Shown here: piece by piece, positions 19,680-54,465 of the stretch
Position numbering within the stretch: position 1 is the first letter of the stretch
Layout: each line of letters opens with the position of its first letter
Assembly: GCA_002269645.1 (NCBI GenBank)
Contig: NIVC01003981.1
Span: 2,591-66,590, forward strand
Length of the DNA stretch: 64,000 nucleotides
DNA from: Macrostomum lignano
Taxonomy: Eukaryota
Reading direction: 5' to 3'
Program-made: the position numbers and the translations under genes
The notes under the pieces: generated by a model
Databases searched by the model: none
What the model saw: only the letters and a program-made list of their open reading frames with translations
What the model was told of the DNA's origin: nothing

Positions 19680-19958
19680 CGAAGCCACAAATCTCACAGC
19701 TGATGATCGAAGCCACAAATCTTACAACTGAGGATCGAAGCCACAAATCTCACAGCTGATTATCGAAGCCACAAATCTTACAACTGAGGATCGAAGCCAC
19801 AAATCTCACAGCTGATGATCGAAGACGCAAATCTCACAACTGAGGATCAAAGCCACAAATCTCACAGCTGAGGATCGAAGCCACAAATCTCACAACTGAG
19901 GATCAAAGCCACAAATCTCACAGCTGAGGATCGAAGTCACAAATCTCACAGCTGGAGA
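19680..19958. repeat. 28-bp minisatellite, ~10 copies, reverse complement of the array at 51640-54465
   Basis: Unit GAAGCCACAAATCTCACAGCTGAGGATC, downstream of eIF2-beta copy A. Confidence 0.95.
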
Positions 19959-20308
19959 TCGCACCCAGGTCTTAAGACTCCAAAGCCGGACAATTTCGAT
20001 AAAAGCAACAACCAATTAAACAGCAAGTTTATTGCAGTTTGACAGCAAATATGCACTGAATAGATAACTTGTACCCATCCACTTAACAGCTTCACTTCTG
20101 ACAATGACTTCTCAGCTTATATTTGCAATCCAGACACTTAATCATTCAACTGATGACGATGTACATATTTGAGCCCAACATTGCCACATAAAGTTCACCC
20201 GCCAGCAGTCAAGTTCATGCAGCACAAGACATGGACAATCAATCAGTCAGCAACCATCTTCATACACAGAGCAATGCCCTCATTATCCAGCTCTTCTCCC
20301 TAACAGTG

Positions 20309-21007
20309 TCACGTGGCCTTGGCCCTCTGCGCAGCTCTCCTGCCCACCTGGGCCTGAAATCCAGACTTGATGCTGGCAACTGAGCACCGACTGCCGCAGG
20401 TGCTGCACTGCAGGAAGAACAGCCGAGTCTCCTTAACGAGCTCAGTGTCGTGAGACCGGCACGTGTGGCACATCACGTACTCCTTGATGTACGAGCGCAG
20501 CACCGATTCAATGTTCTTAGTCTGGAATCTGCCCTTAATAATGAGCTGGTTGTTCCCATCAACCGACCCGGTGGTGCCCAGCTCAGTTAGAAGGTAAGCC
20601 AACAGGTGGTCCGGCTTCCTTCGAATCTGCTTGCTGATCTCCGTGAAGTTGGCAAAGGCGGTCTTCTTGGTTCCAACTCGCATCAGAGACGGAGGCTTCA
20701 TCACCACCTTCTTCTTCTCCGACAGCATATCCGGGTTCCGCTCCATCATGGCGCGGAAGGCCCGGCTGAGCAGCTCGCTGTAGCTGTAATCCTTGTCCTC
20801 GCTTCCATCTCCCTCCACAGCTGACGCCGCGCCTTGGCCTCCGTCCTCCTCAGGCTGCTCAGCCGTCGCCGCGGGTCGCTCCTTCGGCGGCTTCTTCTTC
20901 TTCTTTGTTTCGAGGTTAAAGTCTGCTTCAAGCTCCTCATCCACTGCTGGGGTCTCCTCGGCCAGCTCCTTCTTCTTATTCTTCTTTTTTATGCTCGGGT
21001 CGAACAT
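20309..21007 (-). CDS. EIF2S2: Translation initiation factor eIF2 beta subunit, copy A, exon 2
   Basis: Lys boxes, [40 protein letters not shown] and C2-C2 zinc finger CHTCRS...[10 protein letters not shown]. Polypyrimidine/CAG acceptor immediately before ATG; AATAAA at 20028-20033 (minus strand). Confidence 0.97.
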
Positions 21008-22792
21008 CTGCGCGAGTCAAACAGGGGAGCGAAAGGCATGGCAAACAATCATAAATCATAATTATTAGTCGCTTAAAAGTGACACGGGCAATGCTTTTGA
21101 GTATTACAGTGCTAACTAAGACCACTCAGCTACATTCTAATTAAGTAATTGACAAAATTTGATAAGAATACAACTTCACATTTTTGTATCCATAAAAGCT
21201 TGGGTATAGTATTTAAAATATATACTTGTACCAACAATGTGTTTTCACAGAGTATTTTTCTGCAATTTTATAACATCTTTTGAGATACAAAGGTAGTGTT
21301 CCGCCATAAGGAGGGTCTATGTGCCATAGCCATAAACAAAACTATGGCTTATTCCAATTCTCTGTATTCCATAGCCATGGGGACCCCAAGATTCCCATAT
21401 TCCCATAGAGCCATAGCTGTAGTTTTAACAAAAAATCTAGGAAACCAAATATTTTTAACCTGGAAGATAACCTGGTGCTTAAAAAACTGCAAATTAAGGT
21501 AGAAAATAAAACAAACACTCGATTGCCTTTGTAGGATTATATTTAATCTTTTACAAAGACTAACAATACTTAATCACTACTGAAAGTACTACTGCTAACT
21601 TTTTCACATTAATAAAAGTTAGAGTTTGCTAATGTTTTATTGTACTTTATATATTTGACAAGAAGTTATATTATAATTAAATCTACCTATATGCCTAAAT
21701 AATTTTTTGTTTATGAGGATGACCATGCAATATTAACAAATCTTCTTACTTATTGCTTTCATTATTAAAATATAAAGTAATTCTTGCCTATATCTACATA
21801 TAAGCATTTATACTTGATTTATTTCTATACTATATATATAATGTATATTAGCAATCTTTTATAACTTTCTATTGTGCCTGACAGTGCAATTGAAACAACC
21901 TTCTTTTTTATATTTTAATAATTAATTAGCTTTCAATTTTCAAATTTCTTGGAAGAAGAAACTTCTTACTTTTTCTGCTTTTCGTAGTCTTTTATATATA
22001 AGCTTGCTTTTTTTATTTGTTACTCAATAAATTTTAAATCACTTGGATAAACTAGCATTTATGTTTAGGCTACTATGCTTCAAACAATTTCAGTTAGGCC
22101 CTAATGGTAAAGTGATATTACCATATTACCAATCAGAGTGTTGCTAAGCATAACATGCACAACTGCTGGCCAACCTGGCCGATCTGGCCACAATAAATTG
22201 TGGTGGACCAGGGGTAAGTTACAATAATGCCCAGCTTAAAAAAGACATAGTACTAATTAGATGATGAGACATTTAGCCCTTATAAGACAGTCATAGTTAC
22301 TCCAGCCGTTTACCCAAAATTGCATTTACAGGTAATTTGCATTTTTGGTCAAAAAGTAAGTCGCATGGCCAGTGTAAATCAGGGGGGTTGCGCATATATG
22401 TTGCTAAGCAATATTGAAACAATGTATCTTAAAAAGATTTTTACTTTATTTAATATAAATAAATCAAAGCTTATTTGATGTTAAACAATTGCACAAATAT
22501 TTGCTAAAAATAATTGAAGCAGGTCAACTTTGTTAAAAGTTACAGACAATTGTTTTTAATGTTTATCAAAATATTTATTGGAAATTAGAAAACCCTCAAA
22601 GACAAATAAATTAATAGTTTATAAAAAGAAAGATATTTTGTTTTAAATTTTTTTATACTAAAAGACCTATAAAATTTTTGTATATAGCAACTTTATTCTT
22701 GACCTCTGGGGTATTTTTTATATTGGAATAATATCAAAAAAAACAATAATTTTCATTACTAGGTAGGCCCCTAGGCCCTAGGCTATATCTAC

Positions 22793-24820
22793 GGGTCCTA
22801 GTCATTTCGTCAACTGGCGTTTCGTCAATTGGCCATTTCGTCAACTCAGTTTTTGCATTGGTCGTTTCGTCAACTAGCCAATGAAGCGGTCTCAAACCTC
22901 GGTCACTTCGTCAACTGACCAACGGGGAGTTCCCCAACATAGGTCACTTCGTCAACTGCCAATAAACTACCCCCTCCCGCGGCCGCAAAAAAACTAAAAC
23001 TGAACCCTGAGATGACTAGGGGCCTTTTCATATTGCTTGTTCTGGTTCCAGAACCAGAACCAATTTGTGAAGTATAACTTTTTGTCTCCATAACTAGAGG
23101 GAGATACGTGCTATAAAGTTTTTATTATTGAATGACAATCGCCAAGAAGAAAGTGAAAAATTGTGCTAAGTTAGGTTGTTAAGGCAGTCGAATATTAACA
23201 GAGTTTAATAGTTATACTGCTGTTTTTCTTGGAATTCCGAACCGATTCTGGTTCTGGAATTAGTAATATGAAAAGGCCCTAGGTCGACAGGCTATTTAAT
23301 ATATAGATACCCTTCTGTGCAACATCTGCCGGCTTTGATCGATGCGTCTCTGACTATACATTAACAAACAATAATTCACTCAGGTGTTTGAAACGTGTGC
23401 AGTATGACGCAGTTGATATCCCATGTTACACATTTGCATGACAAATTTTTGGATGTACACGTAGAAATTGATTAAAGAGTAGTTGATGAGTACTGGACCA
23501 AAGATAATAACGCTTGAAATGGTCCATGTACTCTACATGGTTTATTTTAAAAATCTAGCGTATATATATAAAGCATTCCAAATTAACCATAACATTTATG
23601 GTCATGTCGATGTCAATCACGCATTAAAATTTATATAATAATATATATTTTATGCACACACTATACTTAAAACCTATATTAAGTATTTAAACACAATCGT
23701 ACTGCTATCGTAGTGCGATTTTGTACCATTGTACACTGTACAATAGTACATGTAGTTCTGTATGGTAAGTGGTAATACAGTACTAAATGCAGACAAAAGA
23801 AAAAAATATTATTTTAAGAAAATTGCAATACTTCTTGGACTTGATTCATTCCACAAGTACGATGCTGCCAGCGCTCGATGCATTTATCACACTGCAGAGC
23901 CTGTTGTCGCGGTCGAACACGTTCGCTGCAGAGAATGCAGCTATCAGCTGTAGCCTGCTACATGATTGGTAAAGTATATATGTAATATTTAGGAAACAAA
24001 CTGATTTAATTGTGACTTTGACGGGACTTCCATTTATATAGCAGTTTGGATCGTTAGGGTGGGGTGACTTTGGAACTGGTGGGTTAAAGGACTTAACACT
24101 GGCTTAGCACTTTAGTGTTAAGCATGACAGGGAGTAAAATGGCTTACAATATGGCATGATGTGCGTGAATCGTGCATGATATGCTTCATTCAAGAGCATT
24201 ACCGGATATCAAGATTCGCTGCGGGGATCAGCTTCAGTTGACTGCGCACAGCGGGGTGGAGGGGTGGGAAGGCGCACGCTGCAGTCCACCAATTTTCACA
24301 ACTCCACAGGGGACTATTAGCAGTCCTCTCCATGTGTTTTGATAATATGAATGCCCACCATGTACGTGGACACATGTACTGTATGCATGCAGATTGCATA
24401 AAACACAGATGCTCAAGATTCATTGACACCCAGATGCATATGGGTATGAGTGTTCATAGGTGACACACTTGCATCTAGAATATTCGCATCGGAACATTTA
24501 ACCCATCGAATACATGTATAATGGGCATGCAATTAACATATATACTGTACACTGTAACGAAATTGCAAAGTTTGATCGTTTAAAATAAAATTAGGTACTT
24601 ATTAAAACAAACTCATTGATATAACAACTATTGTAAGCTACACAGCTGTATGAACTGCATATCATTCATATAATGACAATTTTGGTCACTTCGTCAACAA
24701 GCAAATGGGGAGGACATAGGCATTGGTCACTTTGTCAACCACCAGTAAAGTCGCCTTAACACTTTGGTCACTTCGTCAACCAAGTTGACGAAACGCCAAT
24801 TGACGAAATGACCATCACCC
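22793..24820. mobile_element. Non-autonomous TIR transposon (GG termini, 8-bp TSD) in intron 1 of copy A
   Basis: Ends GGGTCCTAGTCATTTCGTCAACTGGCGTTTCGTCAA / TTGACGAAACGCCAATTGACGAAATGACCATCACCC, many (C/T)TTCGTCAAC subterminal repeats, and a perfect TSD ATATCTAC (22785-22792, 24821-24828). Confidence 0.88.
23020..23279. mobile_element. PIF/Harbinger-like MITE nested in the 22793-24820 element
   Basis: TIR GGGCCTTTTCATATT / AATATGAAAAGGCCC with 3-bp TSD TAG and internal CCAGAACC repeats. Confidence 0.7.
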
Positions 24821-24843
24821 ATATCTACTTGCCCTGATCTAGA

Positions 24844-25725
24844 GGGGTCGCCATTATAAGCTCGAAAAATCACATTGTCAATAACAAGGCTCTATCACAA
24901 GCTTGAAAAGTCACAAGCTTAAAAAATAACATTGTCAAAAAGTTTAGCAAACATCATCATAAGCTCAAAAAGGCACAAGCTCTAACCCTAACCCCAAGGC
25001 ACTAACCCTAACTCTAAGGCACCAGTACCCTGCCTAACCCTGAACTATAACCCTAATCCCAACCCTAACCTAAACCTAAACCCTAACTTAAAGGCACTAG
25101 TTCTAAATTCAACCCTAACCCTAAACCCTAACCTTAAGGCATAAGCTCTAACCCTAACCCTATTCAAGCTTGTGATAGTGGTTACTAAACTTTTTGACGA
25201 TGTGACTTTTCGAGTTTGTGAATTTTTGAGCTTATGATGGTGGTTGCTAGACTTTTTGATGATATGATTTTTTGAGCTTATAACTTATTGAGCTTGTGAT
25301 GATGGTTGCTAAAACTTTTTGATGATGTGATTTTTTGAGCTTATGACTTTTTGAGCTTGTGATGGTGGCTGCTAAATCAATTTTTCAACAATGTGATTTT
25401 TTGAGCTTATGACTTTTTGAGCTTGTGATGGTGGCTGCTAAATCAATTTTTCAACAATGTGATTTTTTGAGCTTATGACTTTTCAAGCTTGTGATAGTGG
25501 TTGCTAAACTTTTTGACAATATGATTTTTTTAGCTTAAGGTTGAGCTTGTGGGTTGCTAAATCAGTTTTTGACGATGTTATTTTTCGAGCTTATGACTTT
25601 TTGAGCTTGTGATGGTATTGGCTAGATTTTTTGATGATATGATTTTTCAAGCTTATGACTTTTCAAGCTTGTGATAGTGGATGCTTTTTGACAATGTGAT
25701 TTTTTGAGCTTATGATGGGCCTCCC
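24844..25725. mobile_element. TIR element with subrepeat-built arms and an internal (CCCTAA)n telomere-like tract
   Basis: Left GGGGTCGCCATTATAAGCTCGAAAAATCAC versus right-end reverse complement GGGAGGCCCATCATAAGCTCAAAAAATCAC; 7-bp flanking duplication ATCTAGA; degenerate TAACCC repeats at ~24980-25165. Confidence 0.8.
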
Positions 25726-26091
25726 ATCTAGACTATGGTCCTGAATAAATATGTGTATCACGGACACAAAGTGCATGCTATATTAATATACCAAAATTCA
25801 GGCATATATGTTAGCTATCATAAATATAGGCCTAGCTAGGGCAAGGTAGAAATTACAAATAAGATGTTAGAAATAGGCCTATCTAGCATACCTGGTATAA
25901 TTAGACCTAGGCCTAGGCTGCCTAGGCCTAGCCTATGGCTATAATTTTCTAAATGTGGAATAGGCCTAGATATTGCCATTGCCAAACATCAAATAACTAG
26001 AAATTATTTAACATAATTTCTTTTTACCCTATTTATCTTAAGCTCAACGCTCAAGCAAGCTAGGCTTGGCTTAAAAAATAGCAATGCTTAC

Positions 26092-26118
26092 AGGCTCGGC
26101 AGGCTCCTCCATCTCCAT
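26092..26118 (-). CDS. EIF2S2: eIF2-beta copy A, exon 1 (MEMEEPAEP)
   Basis: ATGGAGATGGAGGAGCCTGCCGAGCCT followed by GTAAGC donor, phase 0. Joins exon 2 in frame and is homologous to copy B exon 1. Intron is about 5.1 kb. Confidence 0.8.
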
Positions 26119-27764
26119 GATGTCTTGATGTCCATGATGTCTTGTTGAATTATGATGGCAGTGCTGTGTCTAAAATCTCGCAGTTTGGTTCAAATATGGC
26201 TATGGTAGGCTTCAAAGTCTATATAAGCCTATTATTACAATCTTACTCGATGTATGTCACCATGTGATCGGGTTGGTTGGTTGGCGATAAGAGTCACCGT
26301 GGACAAATTCGACGACAATCTAGTCAAAATTAACGAAAAAAAGGGAAAAAAAATATTATTATTATTAATTTTTCCAGTACAATGGTATTAGTCAATGTAC
26401 ATTACAGTTTACTTTTTTATTAAGTTTGTTTTCTCTATTGTTTGTCCTCAAAAATTTTAAAATGAGCTTTCCAAGAAACGTTTCGCTTCTCTTCGTTCAA
26501 AAATACCTGTGCGTTACGCGTATATCTGTATATCATTATTTTTCTAATCGCAAACACTTAATGCCTATCTAAAACTTTGTTTTAAGCGCTCTATTTTTGG
26601 TTATTTACTTCTTCTCTATAAAAATATCACTCATCTTTATTACCTTATAATTGCCTGCAATCCTTACATTTGATATTTTTTTAATTGTCTGAATAATACC
26701 TATATACTTATTTTTGTTACCTACGGGATCAATTGAATTGCTATACATCGAGTTCATACAATACTTGTTTTTTAATTCCTTACTTAAATACTTTTTGCTT
26801 CGTTAGTCATTAAAGATTGTTTGAAGTTTCGTAGAAAAAAATTGGTAATGGCTAGAGTTCCGGCACCGGAACCCATTTTCTAACAGCTAGGGATCCGGCA
26901 GTGCCGTATAGAAGCATATAAAGCACCCGACGACAACCGGCTAGCCGGGCCAAAAGCTTACAAAATCATCGGGCTAACCGGCAGGAAAGCGCGCTCTCGA
27001 GCTCTCGCTTCTTCCGGCTAGACGGGCCCAAAGCGCGCTCCCATACAATCAAATGGGAGTGTATCAATTGAAAGCTTTTAACGGGTGTTTAATAACAATT
27101 TGCAGTAGAAAAATCGACGTTTGTTAATATTAATTCGCTTGCATGTAATTTGAAAACAAACTTTACAGGAATGAGCTATGGTTCCTATGTTCAACGTTCA
27201 ACAAAAGCTTTTAAGGCATATTTGTTGTGCTACTGTGCATTGCTGTGCTGGCCTATGCACTAGACTAAACAAGTGAAGGCTTCGTGTACAAGATAAATGA
27301 AAGGAGCTTTTCTTAAATTTCTTGTGCATTATTATGTGATTGCTTAAGTAATTTTGTTCTATAGTTTAAAGCCTGTCACATGTCAGTTAATTAATAATAC
27401 GCAGGCATTTGAAATATATATGTAGGTCTAATATTTTGAGAAGTAACTTATAAGCTGCTTTTATTCAATTATAAAAAAGCTTGAATTTAATTAAATTCTA
27501 TTTGTTTAGCTATAGCCCTATGTATTAGGACTATGTATGTAGGAAAGCCTATTGAGCACTAAGCCTAGGCCTAGCTTATTGACTTGGTCTTAATGAATAG
27601 ATTTAGCTAACTTACTAGATAAGAGCCTTAAAATTTTTGTTTTTTCTATCTATCTACTTTATGTATACCAATAGGCCTAGACTAAATAACAAACTATAAA
27701 ACTAAGCCTACAATATTTTATATCAAATACCTGATGTTTGACTTATTTTCCTTTCCTTAGATCC

Positions 27765-30060
27765 CCTCTCCCCTAACCTTGGATTTCCTCCCTCTAACCC
27801 TAGCTTCTCTCCCCCTGACCCCTGGCTTCTCTCCATCCTAATCCTTGGCTTCACTCTTAACCCTTGGCTTCCCTCCCTTGACCTTGGCTTCCCTCCCCCT
27901 GACCCTGGCTTCTCTCCTTACTGACCCCTGGCTTCTCTCCTCCCTGACCCTGGCTTCCCTCTTCTGACCCTGGCTTCTCTTCCCTTGACCCTGGCTTCTC
28001 TCCTCCACTGACCCTGGCTTCTCTCCTCCCCTGACCCAGGCTTCTCTCCTCTCCTGACCCTGGCTTCCTTCCCCTAACCCTGGCTTCTCTCCCCTTGACC
28101 CCTGGCTTCCCTCCATCCTAATCCTTGGCTTCACTCCTAACCCTTGGCTTCCCTCCCTTGACCTTGGCTTCCCTCCCCCTGACCCTGGCTTCTCTCCTTA
28201 CTGACCCCTGGCTTCTCTCCTCCCTGACCCTGGCTTTGCCCCCCTGACCCTGGCTTTTCTTCCCTTGACCCTAGCTTCTCTCCTCCCCTGACCCTGGCTT
28301 CTCTCCTCCCCTGACCTGGCTTCTCTCCTCCCCTGACCCTGGCTTCCTTCCTAACCCTGGCTTCTCTCCCCTTGACCCTGGCTTCTCTCCCCTTGACCCT
28401 GGCTTCTGTCCCCCTGATCCTGGCTTCCCTCCCTTGACCCTGGCTTCTCTCCTCCCCTGACCCTGGCTTTTCTCCTTACTGACCCCTGGCTTCTCTCCCG
28501 CTGACCCTGGCTTCCCTGCCCTGACCCTGGCTTCCTTCCCCTGACCATGGCTTCTCTCCCCCTGACCCTGGCTTCCCTCCCCTGACCCTGGCTTCCCTCC
28601 CCTGACCCTGGCTTCCCTCCCCTGACCGTGGCTTCTCTCCCCCTAACCCTGGCTTCCTTCCCCTGACCCTGGCTTCTCTCCCCCTGACCCTGGCTTCTCT
28701 CTCCCTTACCCTGGCTTCCCTCCCCTGACCCTGGCTTCTCTCCCGCTGGCCTTGGCTTCCCTCACTTGATCCTGGCTTCCCTCCCCTGACCCTGGCTTCT
28801 CTCCCGCTGGCCTTGGCTTCCCTCACTTGACCCTGGCTTCTCTCCCCTGACCCTCGCTTCCTTCCCCTGACCCTGGCTTCTCTCCCCTGGACCCTGGCTT
28901 CTCTCCACTTGGCCCTGGCTTCTCTCCTCTTGACCCTGGCTTCCCTCCCCTGACCCTGGCTTCTCTCCCCTGGCCCTGGCTTTTCTCCTTACTGACCCCT
29001 GGCTTCCCTCCCTCCTGACCCTGGCTTCCCTCCCCTGACCCTGGCTTCTCTCCCCTGACCCTGGCTTCTCTCTGCCTGGCCCTGGCTTTTCGCCTTACTG
29101 ACCCCTGGCTTCTCTCCCCTGACCCTCGCTTCCTTCCCCTGACCCTGGCTTCCTTCCCCTGACCCTGGCTTCCTTCCATCCTAATCCTTGGCTTCACTCT
29201 TAACCCTTGGCTTCCCTCCCTTGACCTTGGCTTCCCTGACCCTGGCTTCTCTCCTTACTGACCCTGGCTTCTCTCCTTACTGACCCTGGCTTCTCTCCTC
29301 CTGACCCTGGCTTCTCTCCTCCCTGACCCTGGCTTCTCTCTCTCCCTGACCCTGGCTTCTCTCCCCCTGACCCTGGCTTCTCTCCCTGACCCTGGCTTCT
29401 CTCCTCCCCTGACCCTGGCTTCTCTCCTCCCCTGACCCTGGCTTCTCTCCTCCCCTGACCCTGGCTTCTCTTCCCCTACCCTGGCTTCCTCCCTTGACCC
29501 TGGCTTCTCTCCCTGACCTGGCTTCCCTCTTGACCCTGGCTTCTCTCCCCTGCCTTGGCTTCCCTCACTTGACCCTGGCTTCTCTCCCCTGACCCTCGCT
29601 TCCTTCCCCTGACCCTGGCTTCCTTCCCCTGACCCTGGCTTCTCTCCCCTGGACCCTGGCTTCTCTCCACTTGGCCCTGGCTTCTCTCCTCCTGACCCTG
29701 GCTTCCCTCCCCTGACCCTGGCTTCTCTCCCCTGGCCCTGGCTTTTCTCCTTACTGACCCCTGGCTTCCCTCCCTCCTGACCCTGGCTTCTCTCCCCCTG
29801 ACCTTGGCTTCCCTCCCTTGACCCTGGCTTCTCTCCACTTGGCCCTGGCTTCTGTCCCCCTGACCCTGGCTTCCCTCCCCTGATCCTGGCTTCCCTCCCT
29901 GACCCTGGCTTCCCTCCCTTGACCCTAGCTTCTCTCCTCCCCTTGACTCTGGCTTCTCTCCCCTGACCCTGGCTTCCCTCCCCTGACCCTGGCTTCCCTC
30001 CCTCCTGACCCCTGGATTCCCTCCCTCCTGACCCCTGTTTCCTTCCCTCTTGACCCATGG
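27765..30060. repeat. ~20-bp C-rich minisatellite (CCCTGACCCTGGCTTCTCTC) in the left arm of the giant element
   Basis: Direct inspection; reverse complement of 36030-39660. Confidence 0.96.
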
Positions 30061-32689
30061 CTCCCTATCTCCTGACCCCTCTTGACCCGTAACTTCTGCC
30101 CTGCTCTGCCCTCTTCCTCTGACGTCTGCTGTCTGCTTTACCTTGCTCCTTTGCCCCCTGCTTTTCTGTCCTCTGGTTTTCTGCCCCCTGCTCTGCCCCC
30201 GCTGCTTTGCTCCCTGCTGTCTGCTTTACCCTGCTTCTCCGCCCTCTGCTAAAGTAGTCTCGTGTTAGTACCAAGCAGCACAGCTTATTGAAAGCACATT
30301 CTTCCTTCAGAAAAAGCTACCGGTGAAGCCCAGCTGCTGTACCATTGGCACCTTTGCTTTTGCCTCTGGTGCGATTGGCCTAGCAACAAACAAGCAGCTG
30401 TTTGTTCACAAGCAGCTGTTCACCCGCAAAAGCTATCCAAGCGCGAGCTTTCTAACTATTTGTACACACTGAGCTGAAATTAGTTTGTATGTGCCGCCAC
30501 TATGAGTTCTGATACGCTGACATCTGGTGCAACCGTTACGGCTGGGTCTGCCGCTGGTTCCACTTAAGCAGCTGCCTCAAACATCGCTGCTGCAGCCGAA
30601 ACTGAAGCTGGCTCCGCCAAAGCTATTTTTTAATTCTTTAATACATGTCGACAATCCCTTTAACATTGAGATCACCGAATTCTGTTAATACATGTTCAGA
30701 TCTTGTAAAGCTCAACAAAAGCACCCATTTGTCATCGCCCTTTTCCAATATTGCTACTCGCATTACTCCCTGTGCAAATGGAGCCACACTCGACGTTTTT
30801 GGTGTCGTTTTTTTAGGTTGTTTATGGGTGGATTTTCCATTTGTAAAAGCATTTTTCGAATCAATGCAGTTTGTAACATCGGAGCTTCATATATTTTTGC
30901 TGTGATTTCTGGGAGACATTTTTTCGAGACGATACTGCTCTGTGACAGGGTATGGTGTTCAACGTGTGCCATTTTAATTCAATCCTTGATCACAAAGCTC
31001 GGAGCAAGTGCCACTAGACTTCAGTGTCAGGCTTTCAGTTTAAGCAAATAATCCAAAATAATTTCGACTGTACCATTGTGGACCAACAATGACCAACCCC
31101 TTATACTGTCAAAATCCTGTTGTTTTTACAGGTTCTTATATTTCTACAAGGAACTGACAGGTGTTTTTTGTTGTTACCGCCAGTTAATTTTTTAAACATT
31201 ACTGCTCTTCATGAAGACGCGTGCAAAAAATACAGATATAAACTTTCATGTTACATACAGTTATGACCAGGAGCTTTCCGATTTTAGTTGGTCATATAAT
31301 TTTGTCGAAAACTTGGTTTTGTGTTTCTGGAGTATTTCTTAAATAGCATGCGCTCCGCAAAATTTTGTTGATTTAGCTTTACACTCCAGAAGTAAAATTT
31401 TCTCAGTGAACTCACATTTTATTTCGCTCTTAGTGGTGCAGCTTAAGCATGTTTCGAATGCTCCCAGCAAGCTGCCGAGAGTTCCTACACTGGCAAGAAA
31501 GGACGCTGCCTTGGTGTAGGGCGCTGAAGTGAACAAAAGTGCGCTCGATCGTCAGCGGTGCACATTTGCTGCATGGGCATTCAGTTTTGTGCTGAGCGGT
31601 GACGTACGCTTTTTTGAGGGGTCTGCAGTCCAGGCGGCGTCATGAAGGAGGGAGTGGGTGCTCCTGCTTCTGAGAAGCCCTCAGAGTACTCTGGAGTGAG
31701 ATTTCTGCTTCTCACATTCGATGTAGTTGAATATTTCCCGCATGCTAGAATATGCACTGTGCCCTTTGACAACCATTGTTATATAAGGTCTTGGTTGCAA
31801 GCTTGGTGCTCCTGAATATAGACCATGAAATGTCTGTTAATGGTGTCTTGGTAAAAGTGCTCAAGAGAGAAATCTTCATGCGATTCTGATGAGCGCTCAC
31901 CCTGGTGGGCCATGGGTATTCCGGCTATAGTGGTTGCATGGAGCAAACCTGAGGCAGGGGTCTAGCAAGGAAGACTCACTTATTGTGTATTAAAAATTTA
32001 CGCATATTCATACATGTAGGGTCGAATTGGGCTTCAGCAACGCAGGGGAAGCGGCAAAATAAGGGCGGGGGCTCGCAGCAGTCTACTGATTCAGTCGGAC
32101 TGCTAGTCTGGGGAGCTGTCAAAACAGCCGATGCGCGGTGCACCAGCTGCCGATGCTGCTTCAGTCGCCTACCAACCTGTTCGCGCTGCCAGGAGCGAAC
32201 TACAAATTAAGTTTTTCTGCTCGATCCAAGTCATGTGACGAAACCCGGGGGCTGCCTGAGAATATCTGTGTAAACCTCTGGGCTCTAGCGCTGAAAATTA
32301 CCAGCCGCCGTGCATGCCTCACATGGACTTTTCCACCTCTGAATGCTGTTTTGTAGCTGACGTTGCGGTCAAGTTTCAATTATCTCGACAGCGCGGGCCC
32401 GGGTTGTTTGTTTGCCGAAGGGCGTGGCCGCCTCTGCAGTCACCTGTGCAGGAGTACACCCGAAAAACTCGACACTACTAGAAATGGCACGTAAATGTAC
32501 ATGTAACACTCTAATGGACTCTATGCGAGGAGGCATACAAGGGACGGTTTACTTGTAATCAGTGCTGGAAATGAGGAATGTAAAGACTTTTGCATAAGGG
32601 GGATCTTTAGTTGGTGGGCGACTCTATAGGAAATGAAGGGGTTCCCGGCGGGGACCGGTGGTTCGGCTTCGCGGGAAAACAAACAATAA

Positions 32690-32980
32690 TAAAACAAATT
32701 TGTATCACCGCGCCGGCCTGGTGCGTCCAAGCGACCTGTTGCGCCGTCAGCGACTCCAGCTGGCAGGCCACATCATCCGCGCCGAATCGTACTGGCCAAA
32801 GCCGGTGCAGGAGGTGCTGCTGCTGACGCTGCAGGCACCGGCCCTACCGGCGGGGACAGGCGCGCACTCGGCGTTTCGACTCGACTAGCTGCCTGCTGGC
32901 TGATGCTGGCGCCCCGGAGCCGGCGGCGTGGCGTTCATTCACGACCTGTGACGCTGACTGCGTATTCTGTTGTTGTTGTT
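32690..32980 (+). mobile_element. 5'-truncated LINE 3' end with (TTG)n tail
   Basis: LYHRAGLVRPSDLLRRQRLQLAGHIIRAESY.PKPVQEVLLLTLQAP resembles the post-RT C-terminus of LINE ORF2 (R.RRL..AGH..R), followed by TGTTGTTGTTGTT at 32968-32980. Confidence 0.7.
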
Positions 32981-34674: not shown

Positions 34675-35044
34675 TTTTATTGGCTTTTTTATTGCAAACA
34701 AAAAAGAACAATTATTTCTCAGTTTTCGTACAACATATCCTTTATTTTTCTCTCGCTCATCGCACATTCCATTGTCAGCTACTAGTATTTTCTCTTTGTC
34801 GTTTGTCAAAAAATGGCACAATTCAGGTACACTAAATGGCACACTATAATAAAAAACGAGAAAATAACACGGACAATTCGATTTAACAATTCCACAAGAC
34901 TTAGCAACAGCCGCAAAAACGAACGTACCACGACGTGAACACCTACAAGTCAACTTATGATTTTTTGACCAAAATATAAAATATGCAGAAGGTACAAGTG
35001 GTCAGTTCAGCCACACTGTCAGAGCGCGACGACAGTCCTTTGGT

Positions 35045-42995: not shown

Positions 42996-43163
42996 GACTG
43001 CGTTGCTGTTCGACTTAAGCCTGGGGAGCTGCTGCGCGAGTCCCTGATGCAACTGGTGAAAGAGCAGGGCCTGAGCTCTGCTTTTGTTATCAGCTGTGTT
43101 GGTAGCCTCACCCAAGCTAGACTGCGCTATGCCACCTCATCTGATGGTTCTGGCACCAACCCA
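42996..43163 (+). CDS. PPC / DUF296-domain protein, internal exon (DCVAVRLKPGELLRESL...CVGSLTQARLRYA...TNP)
   Basis: TTTTTCAG acceptor, 168 nt (56 codons), GTAAGT donor, phase 0/0. RLxPGE and CVGSL motifs are typical of PPC domains. Start exon not identified. Confidence 0.88.
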
Positions 43164-43352
43164 GTAAGTATTCTGATTTTTCTAAAAAAACTCAAGCACT
43201 TGTGATATTATATTAGTCTCAGCAATACATAGAAATGAATTGTTGTCTAGATTTTATCTTTGTGTCATAGAATGTGATATAGAAGATCAAATTTAATTTT
43301 GACACGCTGAATTTAAACCCCAGATGCCATATTGACATTGGCATCATTTTCC

Positions 43353-43762
43353 GGGTCGCCATCATAAACCCGAAAAATCACAACTCCGAAAGCACTTCCC
43401 ATCATAAACCCAAAAAATCACAAACCCGAAAATTCACAACTCCGAAATTAATAGCAACGCCCATCATAAACCCGAAATATCATAAACCCGAAAAATCACA
43501 ACTCCGAAAACCAAAAATGGCAAAATAGCATTGCCCATCGTAAACCCGAAATATCATAACTCCGAAAGTGTTAGCAACGCCCATCATAAACCCGAAATAT
43601 CATAACTTCGAAAACCAAAATAGTGTTGGACATTGCTAGCACTTTCGGAGTTAGGATATTTCGGGTTTGTGATTTTTCGGGTTTATGATGTGCGTTGCTA
43701 TTTTGTTTTTCGGAGTTGTGATTTTTCGGGTTAATGATATTTCGGGATGTGATGCCCCCCCC
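43353..43762. mobile_element. TIR element related to 24844-25725, in the PPC gene intron
   Basis: Starts GGGTCGCCATCATAAACCCGAAAAATCAC. Inverted arrays of AAACCCGAAA/AACTCCGAAA subrepeats. ATTTTCC on both flanks (imperfect TSD). Confidence 0.72.
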
Positions 43763-44364
43763 ATATTTTCCTACCTATATGCCATTTAAATGAAGCTCCA
43801 TATTTGTCACATTTCATTTAAAGCATAAAGAGATAAATAACCTAGCTAATGGTCACTAGTCGGGGGAGAGATAGAGAAGAAGAGGGAATAGAGAAGAGAA
43901 GAGCGGAAAGTCGGAGAGAGGAGATGAGATATGGGACGAAAGAAGAGAAAAGGGAGAAGATAAAAAAAATAGATAAGGATAAGAGACGGCAGAAGAGAAG
44001 GCGAAAGCAGAGGAGAGAAGAGGGGCGAGAGGAGAGGAGAAAGAAGATAGAAGAGAGGGGAGATCAGATACGGGCCAGATTGCTATTGTGAAGTTTCGAG
44101 GCTTCGTGGGTCGGAGGTTGTCGACCTTTGGTTTAGAGTATCACTAATTTTAAAATTATTGGGATTCTTGAAATTTCATTAGTACTCTTTCAAATTTCAA
44201 ATTTGAGTAATTATTCAGTCTGGTAACTTCTGTAGGTCAGAGGGACTCAGCAGTATAAATGGTAGGGTTAAAATGTGAGGTCAATTTATTTGATTTTCTA
44301 ATTTTCAACTAACGCCAGTTGGCATCCGTTGTATTATATCCGATGGGATAATCTTTTATTGCAG

Positions 44365-44631
44365 TCCGAGGTGCTGCAACGCCACATGGAAATTGTTTCA
44401 CTGGTTGGCACCATCAGCCAGGGCGGCCAATCGTGCCATCTGCATATTTGCCTGTCAGACGAGCACGGCCGTGCGATTGGTGGCCACCTCCTTGGCGACG
44501 ATATTGTGTACACAACTGCCGAGGTTGTCCTTGGCTGTCACGCTGGTCTGGTCTTTACCAGGGAGCCGGACCCGGCGACGGCTTTTGACGAATTAGTTGT
44601 GACTGCGGCGCCGGCTTTGAAGCCTAAATGA
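44365..44631 (+). CDS. PPC / DUF296-domain protein, last exon
   Basis: TTATTGCAG acceptor; EIVSLVGT, HLHICLSDEHGRAIGGHL, YTTAEVV, REPDPATAFDEL; TGA at 44629-44631; AATAAA at 44653. Confidence 0.9.
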   Translation, partial: SEVLQRHMEIVSLVGTISQGGQSCHLHICLSDEHGRAIGGHLLGDDIVYTTAEVVLGCHAGLVFTREPDPATAFDELVVTAAPALKPK

Positions 44632-47290: not shown

Positions 47291-47317
47291 ATGGACATGG
47301 AGGAATCATCTGAACCA
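47291..47317 (+). CDS. EIF2S2: eIF2-beta copy B, exon 1 (MDMEESSEP)
   Basis: ATGGACATGGAGGAATCATCTGAACCA followed by GTAAGT; phase 0; in frame with exon 2 at 50587. Intron is about 3.3 kb. Confidence 0.85.
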
Positions 47318-48471
47318 GTAAGTGTATACTAGCAGCCTACCAATTCATTTATTAAGGTATAAGCAGTGGTGTTGGAGCCAGTAGTGGATCCAGAAAATTT
47401 TGAATTGGGGGCACAGACTACTAACTTTAAGCCAGGTACATATATATGCATATCATGTACAAGTATTATATACATGATAATGTGTATTTTACATATAAAA
47501 AACTCGATGGGGGAGGCGCACCTTGTGCACCCCCTCTAAATCTGCTATTGGTTAGAGCATATTTCAAATTGGGAGGGGCCATTGTTGTATTGATGTGAGG
47601 GCACATTGCATGGCTCTGGCTGAAGTCATCATATTTGAGATTGTCATATTTGGTTACAAGAAAAACAACTAAATTATATAATCATGATTGTCTTAGCATT
47701 AGGCAATACTGCATTCACTAAATCATTATATTATATTTCATTGGCTACGCAAGGATATGGGCTCTCATAGTAGCAATATGTTCTTATTTGCCAACAAAAT
47801 GATTTTCAACTGTAATTGTAAATTACATTCATACCATTCGCTTAAAAGATAGGCCTATAAAAGCGTTGTACTAATTCCTATATTAAAGTTAATAGTCTAA
47901 CTGAATATTTAAGTTTTAATTAAGAATGATAGAAAGATTGCCTTGAAATGGTTTGATAGGCTAGGGCCTAACTCTATAATTAGAAGCAGATGTATTTTTT
48001 AAACTTGAGTTATAAACTTGAGTTATATTATTTTTTAGCTATTATAAAAATTTGCTTCAACTTATTCTAGGGTCCTATATTTTTTGTTTCATTTGGTTTC
48101 ATTTTCAAGAAACTTAATGAATTCGTGATATTCAAATGTTAACATCTTATGGATTGCCCCAACCAAGTTTTCATCTTTATATGATAATTTAGAATATAAC
48201 AATTTTGACCATACCCCATTGTACATGTCAATGTGCTCAAGCAAGTTAATGTGCCTTTAGATTAGCCTAAAAATGTATATCTTTAATTTACAAAATGGCA
48301 TTCTTTCATTTTATGATCACTTAGCACTGTCCCTATGGGAGTTGGGACTTTTGTTATACAATCCCCCCACAGAGGACAGAAAATTGCTCTTAAAATCAAA
48401 CTTCAAAATGGGACCACTTCTGTGTCATTTTAATATAAAATATTGTGTCTTATAGAAGTTAGAAGCCTATC

Positions 48472-49126
48472 CTTATATTTACTTTTGTTATGCGATCATT
48501 TAAATGGTGAATTTATATGCAGATGATTGCAAGACGAAACCAAAAGAGCTTGTAGATTTCGACTTACAATCACACCAATAGTAAAATTGTATTGGAAAGA
48601 TCGTATGACAAAATGGTAGGAAATTGTCACTATAATAGACGTTTCAACCAAACAATCAATTGCAGCCTCTAATATGTCTACAAACTGAAAGCCACCTGGC
48701 TCTTTTTACATGGCTCTTTTTGTATGCCTTTTTGGGCACCGCTGCCGCCCTATGCCCCCCTTCATTTTCGTCATACATTCACCCCTCAGTATAACACATA
48801 GGTCCAATGAACTGGGGGGATTTTATGACAAAAGTGAGGGGGTGGCGCTTATGAATCTTATAATGAATACAATTTTATTCTTGAACCCTGTAGATCAATG
48901 ATGGAGATCAATGTAGCAGTTCATATCTTAAGTTGCCGTGAACTAGTGCAACTTCACCAGGGATGTAATGTGTAATCCATTTACTTTCGTCATACAATCC
49001 CTTTAATATAATTCTATCAATGCGGTGATCGTAATTCAAAACCTACAAGCTCTTTCAGTTTTGTCTTGTGATCATCTACATATAAGTTCACCATTTAAAT
49101 GATCATATGACGAAAGTGAATATAAG
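48472..49126. mobile_element. Old inverted-repeat element (~145-bp arms, roughly 80% identical by eye) in intron 1 of copy B
   Basis: GATCATTTAAATGGTGAA..AAAGAGCTTGTAG at ~48495 is mirrored at ~49050-49105, with a shorter inner inverted pair at ~48755/48825. TSD unclear. Confidence 0.6.
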
Positions 49127-50586
49127 CTATGTGCTTTCATAACTAATGCTATGCCCACAATCCTCAAGTTGATTGAAAAGTGAGTTGCAGTGATGAATTA
49201 GGTTGACTGGAAAGTGAGTTGCAATGATTTTGTTCTTGGAAAATAAATGTGAAACATACTTTTTGATAAACTAAAGTGTCTTTTTTGACTCTTTTTAATG
49301 GGGATCGTAAGACAAAACTTGACCTTATCAGGGATTGTAAAACAAAAGAATGCCTACAAAATTAATGATTTTTCAATTACAAAAGCCAATTTTTACTAAA
49401 AATTACTTTTAATTTTGATATTAAAATTATTGTCTCTAGTATTTGGTTTAATGATAAATACTAAATAACAGCAATATATTCAATGAAAATATTGATACAT
49501 TTTAAAACAATAGACAATCAATTACTAATTAGTAAAACTGATGAATAGACAGTCCTATATATATATATATAAAAGCTGCAGTAATGAAGGCATAGTAGGC
49601 ATATCTATCTTCTTTGACTAACCACTCACTAAGTCTACCCATTTGTCTAATAGTCTAACTTTGTACCAAAGACATCTTTTAAGCCATGTCATTTTATGCT
49701 TATTTACAAAAATAATTTTGAAGTTTGCATTTTTAGATATAGGCAAAATGACATTAGTATCAAAAAGCATTGAACTGGCATTTAAATTAGCTAATAAGTG
49801 AACCAATTATTGAATCAATATTTACTATATTTATACTGCTTCTTGCTAGAATGTTGCATGCTTGTTTTTGGGCCATAGACAAAATTCATAGAAAAAGCTA
49901 TAGATAGAAGCCATAGACTCTAAGTATTTTTTACTCTTCAAATTTACACATAGCATGAACAAATCCAATCTAGTTTAGTTCATCTTCTAGAATATTATGA
50001 TATTATTATTAGCTTACCCTTCAACCATTTATTTGGTTCTATTGCTAGTTGCAATATAATCATATTGCAAAGCTATTGTTAAGTGCTCACATTACAAATA
50101 GCATGTCTTACATTAGAAAGATAGCAAAAACACATGCATTTTGAGCCTCACTGCTAGTTGTCTATAGTAAAGAGTATGTCAAACCCGCAGGCAATTAATT
50201 CCTTGGAGAAATCATTTAAGCACTATCTTGCTTGGCCTTTTCATTTATTTCATGCATGCCTCCAACCAAACCAACCAGGAAGCTCCATATGAAAAAGTTA
50301 CAATATAGAACAAGGTTCAGCAAGAAAAAGTTCACTTAACAAAACCTGCATATAAAGAAGCACATGACAAAAAGTTTTTTGTATGTTTAGACTTCATTAA
50401 GTTACATAATCACCTCCCCAGCGATACAGCCTGTGCGAATTCTTGCCTGTGTGCTAAGTTGGCAATGCTTCTATTGTTATCGCCTCTGTCAATAGTGTCG
50501 ATTATCAATCTATGCTTTTCGTCGCTAATCTTCGTTCGTTGCTCTTTGTTTGCAATGCCTTTCACTCCCCTGTTTGACTCGCGCAG

Positions 50587-51288
50587 ATGTTCGACCCGAG
50601 CATAAAAAAGAAGAAGAATAAGAAGAAGGAGCTGGCCGAGGAGACCCCAGCAGTGGATGAGGAGCTTGAAGCAGACTTTAACCTCGAAACAAAGAAGAAG
50701 AAGAAGCCGCCGAAGGAGCGACCCGCGGCGACGGCTGAGCAGCCTGAGGAGGACGGAGGCCAAGGCGCGGCGTCAGCTGTGGAGGGAGATGGAAGCGAGG
50801 ACAAGGATTACAGCTACAGCGAGCTGCTCAGCCGGGCCTTCCGCGCCATGATGGAGCGGAACCCGGATATGCTGTCGGAGAAGAAGAAGGTGGTGATGAA
50901 GCCTCCGTCTCTGATGCGAGTTGGAACCAAGAAGACCGCCTTTGCCAACTTCACGGAGATCAGCAAGCAGATTCGAAGGAAGCCGGACCACCTGTTGGCT
51001 TACCTTCTAACTGAGCTGGGCACCACCGGGTCGGTTGATGGGAACAACCAGCTCATTATTAAGGGCAGATTCCAGACTAAGAACATTGAATCGGTGCTGC
51101 GCTCGTACATCAAGGAGTACGTGATGTGCCACACGTGCCGGTCTCACGACACTGAGCTCGTTAAGGAGACTCGGCTGTTCTTCCTGCAGTGCAGCACCTG
51201 CGGCAGTCGGTGCTCAGTTGCCAGCATCAAGTCTGGATTTCAGGCCCAGGTGGGCAGGAGAGCTGCGCAGAGGGCCAAGGCCACGTGA
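50587..51288 (+). CDS. EIF2S2: Translation initiation factor eIF2 beta subunit, copy B, exon 2
   Basis: Same motifs as copy A; acceptor CTCCCCTGTTTGACTCGCGCAG; AATAAA at 51560. Confidence 0.97.
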
Positions 51289-51639
51289 CACTGTGTTAGG
51301 GAGAATAGCTGGATAATGAGGGCATTGCTCTGTGTATGAAGGTGGTTGCTGACTGATTGATTGTCCATGTCTTGTGCTGCATGAACTTGACTGCTGGCGG
51401 GTGAACTTTATGTGGCAATGTTGGGCTCAAATATGTACACCAGTTGAATGCTTAAGTGTCTGAATGGCAAATATAAGCTGAGAAGTCATTGTCAGAAGTG
51501 AAGCTGTTAAGTGGATGGGTATAAGTTATCTATTCAGTGCATATTTGCTGTCAAACTGCAATAAACTTGCTGTTTAATTGGTTGTTGCTTTTATCTAAAT
51601 TGACCGGCTTCGGAGTCTTAAGACCTGGGTGCGATCCCC

Positions 51640-54465
51640 AACTGTGAGATTTGTGGCTTTGATCCTCAGCTGTGAGATTTGTGGCTTCGATCCTCAGCTG
51701 TGAGATTTGTGGCTTCGATCCTCAGCTGTGAGATTTGTGACTTCGATCCTCAGCTGTGAGATTTGTGGCTTCGATCCTCAGCTGTGAGATTTGTGGCTTT
51801 GATCCTCAGCTGTGAGATTTGTGGCTTCGATCCTCAGCTGTGAGATTTGTGGCTTCGATCCTCAGCTGTGAGATTTGTGGCTTCGATCCTCAGCTGTGAG
51901 ATTTGTGGCTTCGATCCTCAGCTGTGAGATTTGTGGCTTCGATCCTCAGCTGTGAGATTTGTGGCTTTTATGTTTAACTGTGAGATTTGTGGCTTCGATC
52001 CTCAGCTGTGAGATTTGTGGCTTTTATGTTTAACTGTGAGATTTGTGGCTTCGATCCTCAGCTGTGAGATTTGTGGCTTTTATGTTTAACTGTGAGATTT
52101 GTGGCTTCGATCCTCAGCTGTGAGATTTGTGGCTTTTATGTTTAACTGTGAGATTTGTGGCTTCGATCCTCAGCTGTGAGATTTGTGGCTTTTATGTTTA
52201 ACTGTGAGATTTGTGGCTTCGATCCTCAGCTGTGAGATTTGTGGCTTCGATCCTCAGCTGTGAGATTTGTGACTTTCATCTCCAGCTGTGAGATTTGTGG
52301 CTTTTATGTTTAACTGTGAGATTTGTGGCTTCGATCCTCAACTGTGAGATTTGTGGCTTCGATCCTCAGCTGTGAGATTTGTGACTTTCATCTCCAGCTG
52401 TGAGATTTGTGGCTTTTATGTTTAACTGTGAGATTTGTGGCTTCGATCCTCAGCTGTGAGATTTGTGGCTTTTATGTTTAACTGTGAGATTTGTGGCTTC
52501 GATCCTCAGCTGTGAGATTTGTGGCTTCGATCCTCAGCTGTGAGATTTGTGACTTTCATCTCCAGCTGTGAGATTTGTGGCTTTTATGTTTAACTGTGAG
52601 ATTTGTGGCTTCGATCCTCAGCTGTGAGATTTGTGGCTTCGATCCTCAGCTGTGAGATTTGTGACTTTCATCTCCAGCTGTGAGATTTGTGGCTTCGATC
52701 CTCAGCTGTGAGATTGTGGCTTCGATCCTCAGCTGTGAGATTTGTGGCTTCGATCCTCAGCTGTGAGATTGTGGCTTCGATCCTCAGCTGTGAGATTTGT
52801 GGCTTTTATGTTTAACTGTGAGATTTGTGGCTTCGATCCTCAGCTGTGAGATTTGTGGCTTTTATGTTTAACTGTGAGATTTGTGGCTTCGATCCTCAGC
52901 TGTGAGATTGTGGCTTCGATCCTCAGCTGTGAGATTTGTGACTTCGATCCTCAGCTGTGAGATTTGTGGCTTCGATCCTCAGCTGTGAGATTGTGGCTTC
53001 GATCCTCAGCTGTGAGATTTGTGGCTTCGATCCTCAGCTGTGAGATTTGTGGCTTTTATGTTTAACTGTGAGATTTGTGACTTCGATCCTCAGCTGTGAG
53101 ATTTGTGGCTTCGATCCTCAGCTGTGAGATTTGTGGCTTCGATCCTCAGCTGTGAGATTTGTGGCTTCGATCCTCAGCTGTGAGATTGTGGCTTCGATCC
53201 TCAGCTGTGAGATTTGTGGCTTCGATCCTCAGCTGTGAGATTTGTGGCTTTTATGTTTAACTGTGAGATTTGTGGCTTCGATCCTCAGCTGTGAGATTTG
53301 TGGCTTTTATGTTTAACTGTGAGATTTGTGGCTTCGATCCTCAGCTGTGAGATTGTGGCTTCGATCCTCAGCTGTGAGATTTGTGGCTTCGATCCTCAGC
53401 TGTGAGATTTGTGGCTTCGATCCTCAGCTGTGAGATTGTGGCTTCGATCCTCAGCTGTGAGATTTGTGGCTTCGATCCTCAGCTGTGAGATTTGTGGCTT
53501 CGATCCTCAGCTGTGAGATTTGTGGCTTTTATGTTTAACTGTGAGATTTGTGGCTTCGATCCTCAGCTGTGAGATTTGTGACTTCGATCCTCAGCTGTGA
53601 GATTTGTGGCTTCGATCCTCAGCTGTGAGATTGTGGCTTCGATCCTCAGCTGTGAGATTTGTGGCTTTTATGTTTAACTGTGAGATTTGTGACTTCGATC
53701 CTCAGCTGTGAGATTGTGGCTTCGATCCTCAGCTGTGAGATTTGTGGCTTCGATCCTCAGCTGTGAGATTGTGGCTTCGATCCTCAGCTGTGAGATTTGT
53801 GGCTTCGATCCTCAGCTGTGAGATTTGTGGCTTTTATGTTTAACTGTGAGATTTGTGGCTTCGATCCTCAGCTGTGAGATTTGTGGCTTTTATGTTTAAC
53901 TGTGAGATTTGTGGCTTCGATCCTCAGCTGTGAGATTGTGGCTTCGATCCTCAGCTGTGAGATTTGTGGCTTCGATCCTCAGCTGTGAGATTGTGGCTTC
54001 GATCCTCAGCTGTGAGATTTGTGGCTTCGATCCTCAGCTGTGAGATTTGTGGCTTCGATCCTCAGCTGTGAGATTTGTGGCTTTTATGTTTAACTGTGAG
54101 ATTTGTGGCTTCGATCCTCAGCTGTGAGATTTGTGACTTCGATCCTCAGCTGTGAGATTTGTGGCTTCGATCCTCAGCTGTGAGATTTGTGGCTTCGATC
54201 CTCAGCTGTGAGATTTGTGGCTTCGATCCTCAGCTGTGAGATTTGTGGCTTCGATCCTCAGCTGTGAGATTTGTGGCTTTTATGTTTAACTGTGAGATTT
54301 GTGGCTTCGATCCTCAGCTGTGAGATTTGTGGCTTTTATGTTTAGCTGTGAGATTTGTGGCTTTCATCTCCAGCTGTGAGATTTGTGGCTTTCATCTCCA
54401 GCTGTGAGATTTGTGGCTTCGATCCTCAGCTGTGAGATTTGTGGCTTTTATGTTCAACTGTGAGG
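51640..54465. repeat. 28-bp minisatellite (GATCCTCAGCTGTGAGATTTGTGGCTTC), ~100 copies with interspersed variant units
   Basis: Period of 28 (gatcc at 51661, 51689). Recurrent variants ...TTTTATGTTTAACTG... and ...TTTCATCTCCAGCTG... Confidence 0.97.

Follow-up and report, generated by a model that had tools for sequence, protein, structure and literature searches.

The DNA analysed here is a 64,000-nucleotide (nt) stretch of the genome of the flatworm Macrostomum lignano (contig NIVC01003981.1, positions 2,591 to 66,590; assembly Mlig_3_7, GCA_002269645.1), referred to as the window, in which each coordinate equals the record coordinate minus 2590. The window contains two genes for the beta subunit of eukaryotic initiation factor 2 (eIF2-beta) in divergent (head-to-head) arrangement, the left one on the minus strand and the right one on the plus strand. 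Comparison of the 233-amino-acid (aa) product of the right-copy open reading frame (ORF) with known proteins showed that its top match, at 100% identity, is the M. lignano protein PAA49088.1 (BOX15_Mlig014777g2), whose locus is 100% identical to positions 36112..10309 of the window. Animal EIF2S2 proteins matched the same product at 57-73% identity in hundreds of matches, the eIF-5/eIF-2B domain (PF01873) was detected at residues 106-217 (E = 7.5e-40; 135.9 bits against a cut-off of 27), and the closest solved structure in the PDB was human eIF2 subunit 2 (E = 5.8e-72). The product of exon 2 also contains a C-terminal C2-C2 zinc ribbon (CxxC...CxxC, with CHTC at residue 181 and CSTC at residue 202) and lysine runs at residues 7-10 plus 12-14 (a single interrupted box), 36-40 and 99-101. 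Canonical eukaryotic eIF2-beta has three N-terminal lysine boxes; the full M. lignano protein is short (241-242 aa, compared to 333 in human), so the count of functional K-boxes is uncertain. As judged from its sequence, the gene is the predicted EIF2S2/SUI3 orthologue of M. lignano. A protein similarity search with the exon 2 product turned up no second M. lignano eIF2-beta cluster, and on this ground the copies are taken to be the working eIF2-beta genes rather than side copies.

The features of the two copies and of the sequence between them are given in Table 1. In both copies, a single intron lies at one phase-0 position before ATGTTCGAC, with canonical gtaag donors and a cag acceptor, and exon 2 starts exactly at an ATG, preceded by ...ctcccctgtttgactcgcgcag (cgcgcag, then ATG). 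Origin of either copy as a processed retrogene was ruled out by the intron that both retain at the shared position with canonical splice sites. The poly(A) signal AATAAA is found 272 nt past the stop codon. Just past this signal, a 28-bp minisatellite begins in both arms, and it could be a start point of arm-to-arm exchanges.

Table 1. Features of the two eIF2-beta copies and of the spacer between them (window coordinates)
Feature	Position	Strand	Remarks
Left copy (AL) exon 1, coding part	26092..26118	-	ATGGAGATGGAGGAGCCTGCCGAGCCT (MEMEEPAEP), then donor gtaagc
Left copy intron	21008..26091	-	5,084 nt; orthologous to the BL and CL introns
Left copy exon 2, coding sequence	20309..21007	-	699 nt, 232 aa plus stop; eIF2-beta core, lysine runs, zinc ribbon
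Left copy 3′-UTR and downstream homologous sequence	19962..20308	-	AATAAA at 20033..20028
Minisatellite closing the left arm	19680..19961	.	28-bp unit, ~10 copies
Right copy (AR) candidate exon 1	47291..47317	+	ATGGACATGGAGGAATCATCTGAACCA (MDMEESSEP), then donor gtaagt
Right copy intron	47318..50586	+	3,269 nt; last 41 nt (50546-50586) homologous to the left copy
Right copy exon 2, coding sequence	50587..51288	+	702 nt, 233 aa plus stop
Right copy 3′-UTR	51289..51631	+	343 nt; AATAAA at 51560-51565
Minisatellite closing the right arm	51632..54468	.	28-bp unit, ~102 copies, tenfold the left arm
Insertion between the eIF2-beta genes	26924..40499	.	13,576 bp; 748-nt terminal inverted repeats with 1 mismatch
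Intervening gene, PCC/PPC domain (PF03479)	42996..44631	+	two exons, E = 1.8e-22

Local alignment of the two arms (21048-19680 and 50546-51913) gave 1,374 columns with 96.9% identity. The result showed that the coding sequences (CDSs) of exon 2 differ by 0 substitutions over 699/702 nt and by a single AAG indel (right 50608-50610), that two mismatches lie in the 41 nt 5′ of the acceptor, and that the 3′ untranslated region (3′-UTR) contains 10 substitutions and two indels before the arms enter the minisatellite. The first exons differ at 8/27 nt. When the introns and upstream regions of the two copies were compared by sensitive blastn (word size 7), no hidden intron homology was detected: the only matches were a 62-bp tandem-repeat family (25167-25715 and 43361-43614), a 64-nt inverted repeat and the acceptor segment, the final 41 nt (21008-21048) being all that the left intron has in common with the right one. 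Forced alignment of the two introns left 59% of positions mismatched. Hence a tract of high identity, with a CDS free of substitutions at its core, is bounded on its 5′ side by unalignable sequence. These results reproduce the description in an initial annotation of this DNA in its CDS, 3′-UTR, acceptor, exon 1 and intron comparisons; its phrase "identical exon 2" holds for the CDS part but not for the whole exon, in which the 3′-UTR differs. At the substitution rate of the flanks (12/374, 3.2%), about 5 differences would be expected at the 155 synonymous sites of the CDS and 0 were observed (P(0) ~0.007; Fisher's test, p = 0.015).

The window was translated in six frames and searched for the motif M[DE]MEE, which gave exactly two matches, one 5′ of each copy and in the correct orientation; in 300 shuffles of the sequence there were 0 matches. 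The right candidate exon 1 thus shows a clear relationship to its left counterpart, with M[DE]MEE..EP and the donor in common, implying that the whole gene was once duplicated.

Two more contigs of Mlig_3_7, NIVC01000799.1 and NIVC01000302.1, bear the same head-to-head pair. They are referred to as loci B and C, the window locus being A, and the copies are named by locus and type (L, left-type; R, right-type). BL corresponds to PAA76725.1 and BR to PAA76727.1, which is annotated as partial; the copies of locus C are CL and CR. Comparison with the window by blast showed that the left-type intron, exon 1 and outer flank are orthologous across A, B and C, as is the right side. An artificial palindromic contig, derived from a chimeric PacBio read, was ruled out, given that the arrangement occurs in three contigs with non-homologous introns and that the inner inverted repeat represents a genuine insertion bearing a target-site duplication.

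A six-way alignment was made of exon 2, 500 nt upstream and the 3′-UTR of AL, AR, BL, BR, CL and CR. The 477 nt upstream of position -41 diverged by 0.45-2.2% within type and by ~59% between types, the latter figure being that of unrelated sequence. From -41 to -1, the same two left/right differences (-33 and -23) were fixed in all three loci, and in the CDS there was no fixed left/right difference. The CDSs of AL, AR, CL and CR were identical except for the AAG that is missing from AL and carried by the other five copies. BR showed one change, nt 145 A>G (Thr49Ala), which is also present in BL, and BL showed five private changes, two of them non-synonymous (Lys>Arg and Pro>Leu) and three synonymous. 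Since the introns are conserved by type between loci yet unalignable between types, the duplication appears to be much older than the split of the loci, and at the time of that split the two coding exons would already have been identical. An old age had been proposed in the initial annotation from the divergence of exon 1. The real evidence for it is provided by the unalignable introns. Exon 1 divergence is ill suited as a clock, given that the left exon 1 varies even between loci, reading MEMEEPAEP in A and MDEPAEP, with scrambled sequence in the 40 nt upstream, in B and C. The right candidate exon 1 is identical across A, B and C.

One explanation that dispenses with exchange is that the two genes are old duplicates whose CDSs have been kept identical by extreme synonymous constraint in a highly expressed gene. 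The G+C content at third codon positions (GC3) is indeed high (0.76, compared to 0.33-0.35 in the introns). However, when the CDS was compared with a transcript of another Macrostomum species (Logan SRR28338163; 84% aa identity, N-terminus MEEP followed by MFDPS), 63/85 fourfold sites differed, that is, these sites are saturated, and synonymous constraint is therefore not the cause of the CDS identity. Synonymous changes do arise, as BL has gained three private ones at about the intron rate, and the unconstrained 3′-UTR is ~97% identical between left and right although the introns are unalignable. Constraint without exchange is effectively refuted by these data, and its probability is close to nil. 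GC3 was also considered as a sign of biased conversion and was found uninformative, being 0.76 here and 0.68 in the other Macrostomum species.

The near-total identity of the CDS among the six copies could also be an artefact, true differences between the exons having been erased by Canu read correction or by Pilon with multi-mapping reads. Mlig_3_7 is a highly redundant assembly and was polished by Pilon with Illumina shotgun and RNA-seq data (PMC5730564). Against this, the 3′-UTR, which is transcribed too, retains copy-specific differences of 2-5% from 3 nt past the stop codon, the five private CDS substitutions of BL and the AAG indel survived polishing, and reads with a true single-nucleotide polymorphism map best to their own copy. 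Erasure during assembly is, on this evidence, very unlikely.

The six-way alignment further revealed six polymorphic events that are shared between left and right copies, at offset 144 in the CDS and at offsets 705-6, 719, 980, 991-996 and 1024 in the 3′-UTR. Across the six copies, left-type, right-type and locus-specific states are interspersed in the 3′-UTR as in a mosaic. At offsets 851-882, AL and CL carry a left-type block (a CATCGT insertion and three substitutions) and BL is right-type; at offset 755 the right-type G is present in AR and CR and BR has the left-type state; at offset 904 the right-type T is present in BR and CR and AR has the left-type state. States specific to locus B were found in both BL and BR, namely a substitution at offset 980, which turns AATAAA into AGTAAA in both copies, and a complex change at offsets 991-996 (GTT--T to AGCAAA). 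As a complex change of this kind cannot plausibly arise twice, its presence in BL and BR points to exchange. Owing to the states common to both B copies and to the mosaic, BL and BR diverge in the 3′-UTR by only 2.1%, less than BL from AL (4.8%) or from CL (4.5%). The phylogenetic signals are accordingly discordant: the introns group by type over the three loci, whereas BL and BR group together in the 3′-UTR. In the four-gamete test, 34/78 pairs failed (13 informative events in the 1.1-kb tract), and the Hudson-Kaplan minimum (Rm) was at least 4 exchanges in 1.1 kb. Polymorphism common to paralogues is a classical sign of continuing conversion between them. The shared left/right polymorphisms, together with the locus-specific states in both B copies, imply that exchange took place after the loci had split. 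With regard to locus B itself, the AGTAAA signal, the complex change and the Lys>Arg and Pro>Leu substitutions of BL raise the possibility that this locus may be drifting functionally.

These findings bear on a simpler scenario, in which a single partial duplication or one-off replacement (from -41 to the minisatellite) occurred shortly before the loci split and was followed by purifying selection alone. The edge of homology at -41 is sharp in each of the six copies, left/right divergence of the flanks is uniform (2-5%), and identical coding regions with unrelated flanks can come from partial duplication (PMC3966223). However, the shared polymorphisms and the B-specific states, including the complex change at 991-996, need exchange after the split, the related right exon 1 indicates that the whole gene, not part of it, was duplicated, and a one-off replacement would itself be a conversion event. 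This scenario is therefore regarded as unlikely. A further alternative is homogenisation templated by RNA, in which reverse-transcribed mRNA of one copy recombined with the other. The fully identical block extends from -23 to +704, in essence exon 2 from its first base; exon 2 is intron-less, and the gene keeps only its 5′-proximal intron, compared to a species average of 4.9 introns per gene. Homology nevertheless takes in 41 nt of intron and passes the poly(A) signal into a non-transcribed minisatellite common to both arms, and the short, patchy tracts of the 3′-UTR look like heteroduplex repair. Nothing specific for a cDNA intermediate was seen, making this route highly improbable.

The explanation that we consider probable is that the two genes are old inverted paralogues and that ectopic (non-allelic) gene conversion has acted repeatedly on one tract to homogenise it. 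The initial annotation had proposed that exon 2 was homogenised by conversion between old inverted duplicates, and this proposal gains support from the three loci, the type-specific introns and the shared polymorphisms. Ectopic conversion between old inverted paralogues is thus well supported, as a new example of a well-known process. According to this model, an ancestral eIF2-beta gene would have been duplicated long ago in inverted, divergent orientation, and the introns, promoters and most of exon 1 would since have diverged beyond alignment. The converted tract would comprise ~41 nt before the exon 2 acceptor, the CDS and the 3′-UTR and would continue into the downstream minisatellite. The exchange partner would be the other copy on the same chromosome, and exchange would proceed at the DNA level, by conversion from arm to arm within a locus. 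Because homology stops in the intron, conversion would be unable to spread 5′. The fixed differences at -33 and -23 may represent an edge effect or constraint on splice signals, and conversion that is patchy in the 3′-UTR, combined with purifying selection on the protein, would yield a CDS without left/right difference.

Several points weigh against this explanation. All six copies come from one assembly, polished as described above. The right exon 1 is a candidate, and the sole right-type model, that of BR, is partial and runs from codon 2 of exon 2. The proposed age of the duplication is relative to the split of the loci. The excess of identity in the CDS over the 3′-UTR is just modestly significant (p ~0.007-0.03), the comparisons for A and C being non-independent. 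Finally, exchange between loci or haplotypes, or chimeric contigs, could explain some of the incompatible sites, as the loci are reticulate. Locus C is a mosaic: its central ~9 kb is 99.6-99.9% identical to B, whereas from ~0.8 kb upstream of left exon 2 outward it shares more with A (97.3%) than with B (at most 96.5%). A, B and C may therefore represent homeologues or haplotypes that recombine, or contigs that are chimeric in part. The reticulation does not affect those conclusions that draw on linkage over ~1.5 kb, from intron type to 3′-UTR state.

To our knowledge, no case of gene conversion of eIF2-beta has been described, and none was found in literature searches; a literature search for gene conversion in Macrostomum returned nothing relevant, and one for the gene identifiers Mlig004290, Mlig014777 and Mlig022373 returned nothing. 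Duplicated genes for translation factors that are kept identical by conversion are known from bacterial tufA/tufB, yeast TEF1/TEF2 and duplicated ribosomal-protein genes. Like tufA/tufB and TEF1/TEF2, the eIF2-beta genes encode a core translation component and consist of two copies with near-identical CDSs and unrelated flanks; unlike those genes, which belong to other organisms and factors and are dispersed, the eIF2-beta copies are adjacent. In the ampliconic palindromes of the primate Y chromosome, arms of tens of kb to Mb are >99.9% identical throughout and are separated by short spacers. The eIF2-beta pair resembles them in consisting of inverted repeats, located on a single chromosome, between which conversion would transfer sequence, but its arm measures 1.37 kb plus an unequal minisatellite (10 vs 102 copies) with 96.9% identity, and its spacer is 29.6 kb, or 16 kb without the insertion, so that it falls outside the definition of a large palindrome. 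The term "palindrome-like" used for the locus in the initial annotation is accordingly overstated.

Inverted pairs provide another parallel. Drosophila Hsp70Aa/Ab is an inverted pair with concerted evolution by conversion. The hsp16 modules and hsp70-7/8 of Caenorhabditis elegans are likewise inverted pairs with intrachromosomal conversion and with identity largely confined to the coding unit (PMC3966223). The heat-shock genes lack introns, the members of a pair are spaced by a few hundred bp to a few kb, and a bidirectional control region is often common to both. The eIF2-beta copies, by contrast, are each equipped with a large intron and a first exon of their own and have a further gene located between them. 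It is well documented that conversion homogenises adjacent paralogues, both direct and inverted and often in the coding sequence only. Among the examples in C. elegans are col-12/col-13, old duplicates in which frequent conversion keeps the CDS near-identical while the 5′ ends differ (PMC3966223). One of these two genes has a cis-spliced leader exon and the other is trans-spliced to a spliced leader (SL) (PMC3966223). M. lignano also uses SL trans-splicing, and the eIF2-beta copies too differ in their first exons; in contrast to col-12/col-13, which are tandem direct copies 1.8 kb apart, they are inverted and 16-30 kb apart.

The join of exon 1 to exon 2 in the left type is backed by two annotated models, PAA49088.1 for AL (MEEPAEP followed by exon 2) and PAA76725.1 for BL. 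The right candidate exon 1 was found in no annotated or collected protein. Exact look-ups of the full-length right-type forms (242/240 aa), the left-type form (241 aa), the bare exon 2 and SL-ATG-initiated forms gave no match in the protein collection; as all of these look-ups were empty, transcript evidence stands neither for nor against use of the right exon 1. Both eIF2-beta copies are presumably expressed. In M. lignano, 30-39% of genes are trans-spliced, with an SL ending in ...TTGCATG, and the exon 2 acceptor, directly before the ATG, could serve as a trans-splice site too. No SL RNA gene or tRNA was found in a search of the window. It is conceivable, though doubtful, that the copies are regulatory sub-functionalised genes with different promoters and first exons, the right copy perhaps being SL trans-spliced at the exon 2 acceptor. 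Such a pair would be similar to col-12/col-13. Compatible with this are the start of the BR model, which coincides with the exon 2 boundary, the terminal ATG of the SL and the candidate status of the right exon 1. If so, conversion would let an essential initiation factor be expressed under two kinds of regulation while its protein core stays free of divergence. No evidence was obtained for the claim in the initial annotation that conversion keeps the factor duplicated.

The eIF2-beta loci provide a well-delimited and internally controlled case of concerted evolution in a model flatworm with a hidden-polyploid genome. The presence of three loci in one assembly separates the age of the duplication, recorded in the type-specific introns, from the age of the last homogenisation, recorded in the shared polymorphisms. 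In practical terms, six near-identical eIF2-beta coding units are present in the assembly of the DV1 line, and knock-out, RNA interference, in situ and expression work must target or distinguish all of them, the only copy-specific markers being 3′-UTR variants and the first exons. The 3′-UTR markers include A/G at 51342, the CATCGT indel at 20156-20161 and, for locus B, AGTAAA in place of AATAAA. Ages of duplicates estimated from synonymous divergence (dS) in the M. lignano genome can be badly underestimated. Existing knowledge of gene conversion or of eIF2 is not changed by these findings.

The left exon 1 region of A (26092-26160, minus strand) was compared with the locus-B record (L001, ~9960-10025). 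It contains a local tandem duplication in which CAAGACATCATGGA occurs twice and which yields an upstream out-of-frame ATG and the MEME start; the left exon 1 of loci B and C has a 5′ leader different from that of A. The added ATGGANATGGAGGA in this region of A resembles the right exon 1 and could have arisen by micro-conversion or simply by slippage.

Nearly half of the spacer between the two genes is taken up by the 13.6-kb insertion, which has the termini CACCCGACGA... and a 7-bp target-site duplication (TATAAAG/TATAAGG) and holds long inverted arrays of a 20/41-bp satellite (27766-30078 and 36031-39654). Loci B and C have an intact, unoccupied site at this place, implying that the insertion is recent. 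No transposase-sized ORF was found in it, and it is a putative foldback-like, non-autonomous element. The insertion site is flanked by the 64-nt inverted repeat mentioned above (26842-26905 and 40662-40725; 87.5% identity), the arms of which are only ~175 nt apart in B and C; this repeat could be a miniature inverted-repeat transposable element or could be what is left of the midpoint of the ancestral inverted duplication.

The gene with the PCC domain lies between the eIF2-beta copies in all three loci (1335-2453 in the locus-B record L001; 953-2068 in the locus-C record L005). PF03479 stands for 'Plants and Prokaryotes Conserved', and here the domain is located in a flatworm chromosome. To go by the domain match, the gene could be a candidate for horizontal transfer or could represent an overlooked animal lineage.

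The window is unusually rich in minisatellites, further arrays being located at 426-2341, 3396-4096, 5790-10649, 18279-19042, 57856-58161, 58545-58832 and 60804-61465 and including one with 156 repeats of a 31-bp unit over 4.9 kb and one with 56 repeats of a 34-bp unit. This richness fits the 15% of simple and tandem repeats reported for the M. lignano genome. A degenerate fragment of a piggyBac-type transposase was found at 12890-13345 on the minus strand (PF13843, E = 1.7e-18). Positions 62800-64000 contain very GC-rich overlapping ORFs of 190-240 aa that are rich in Ala, Gln and Pro and have no Pfam match; a low-complexity gene at the contig end may have its first exon here.

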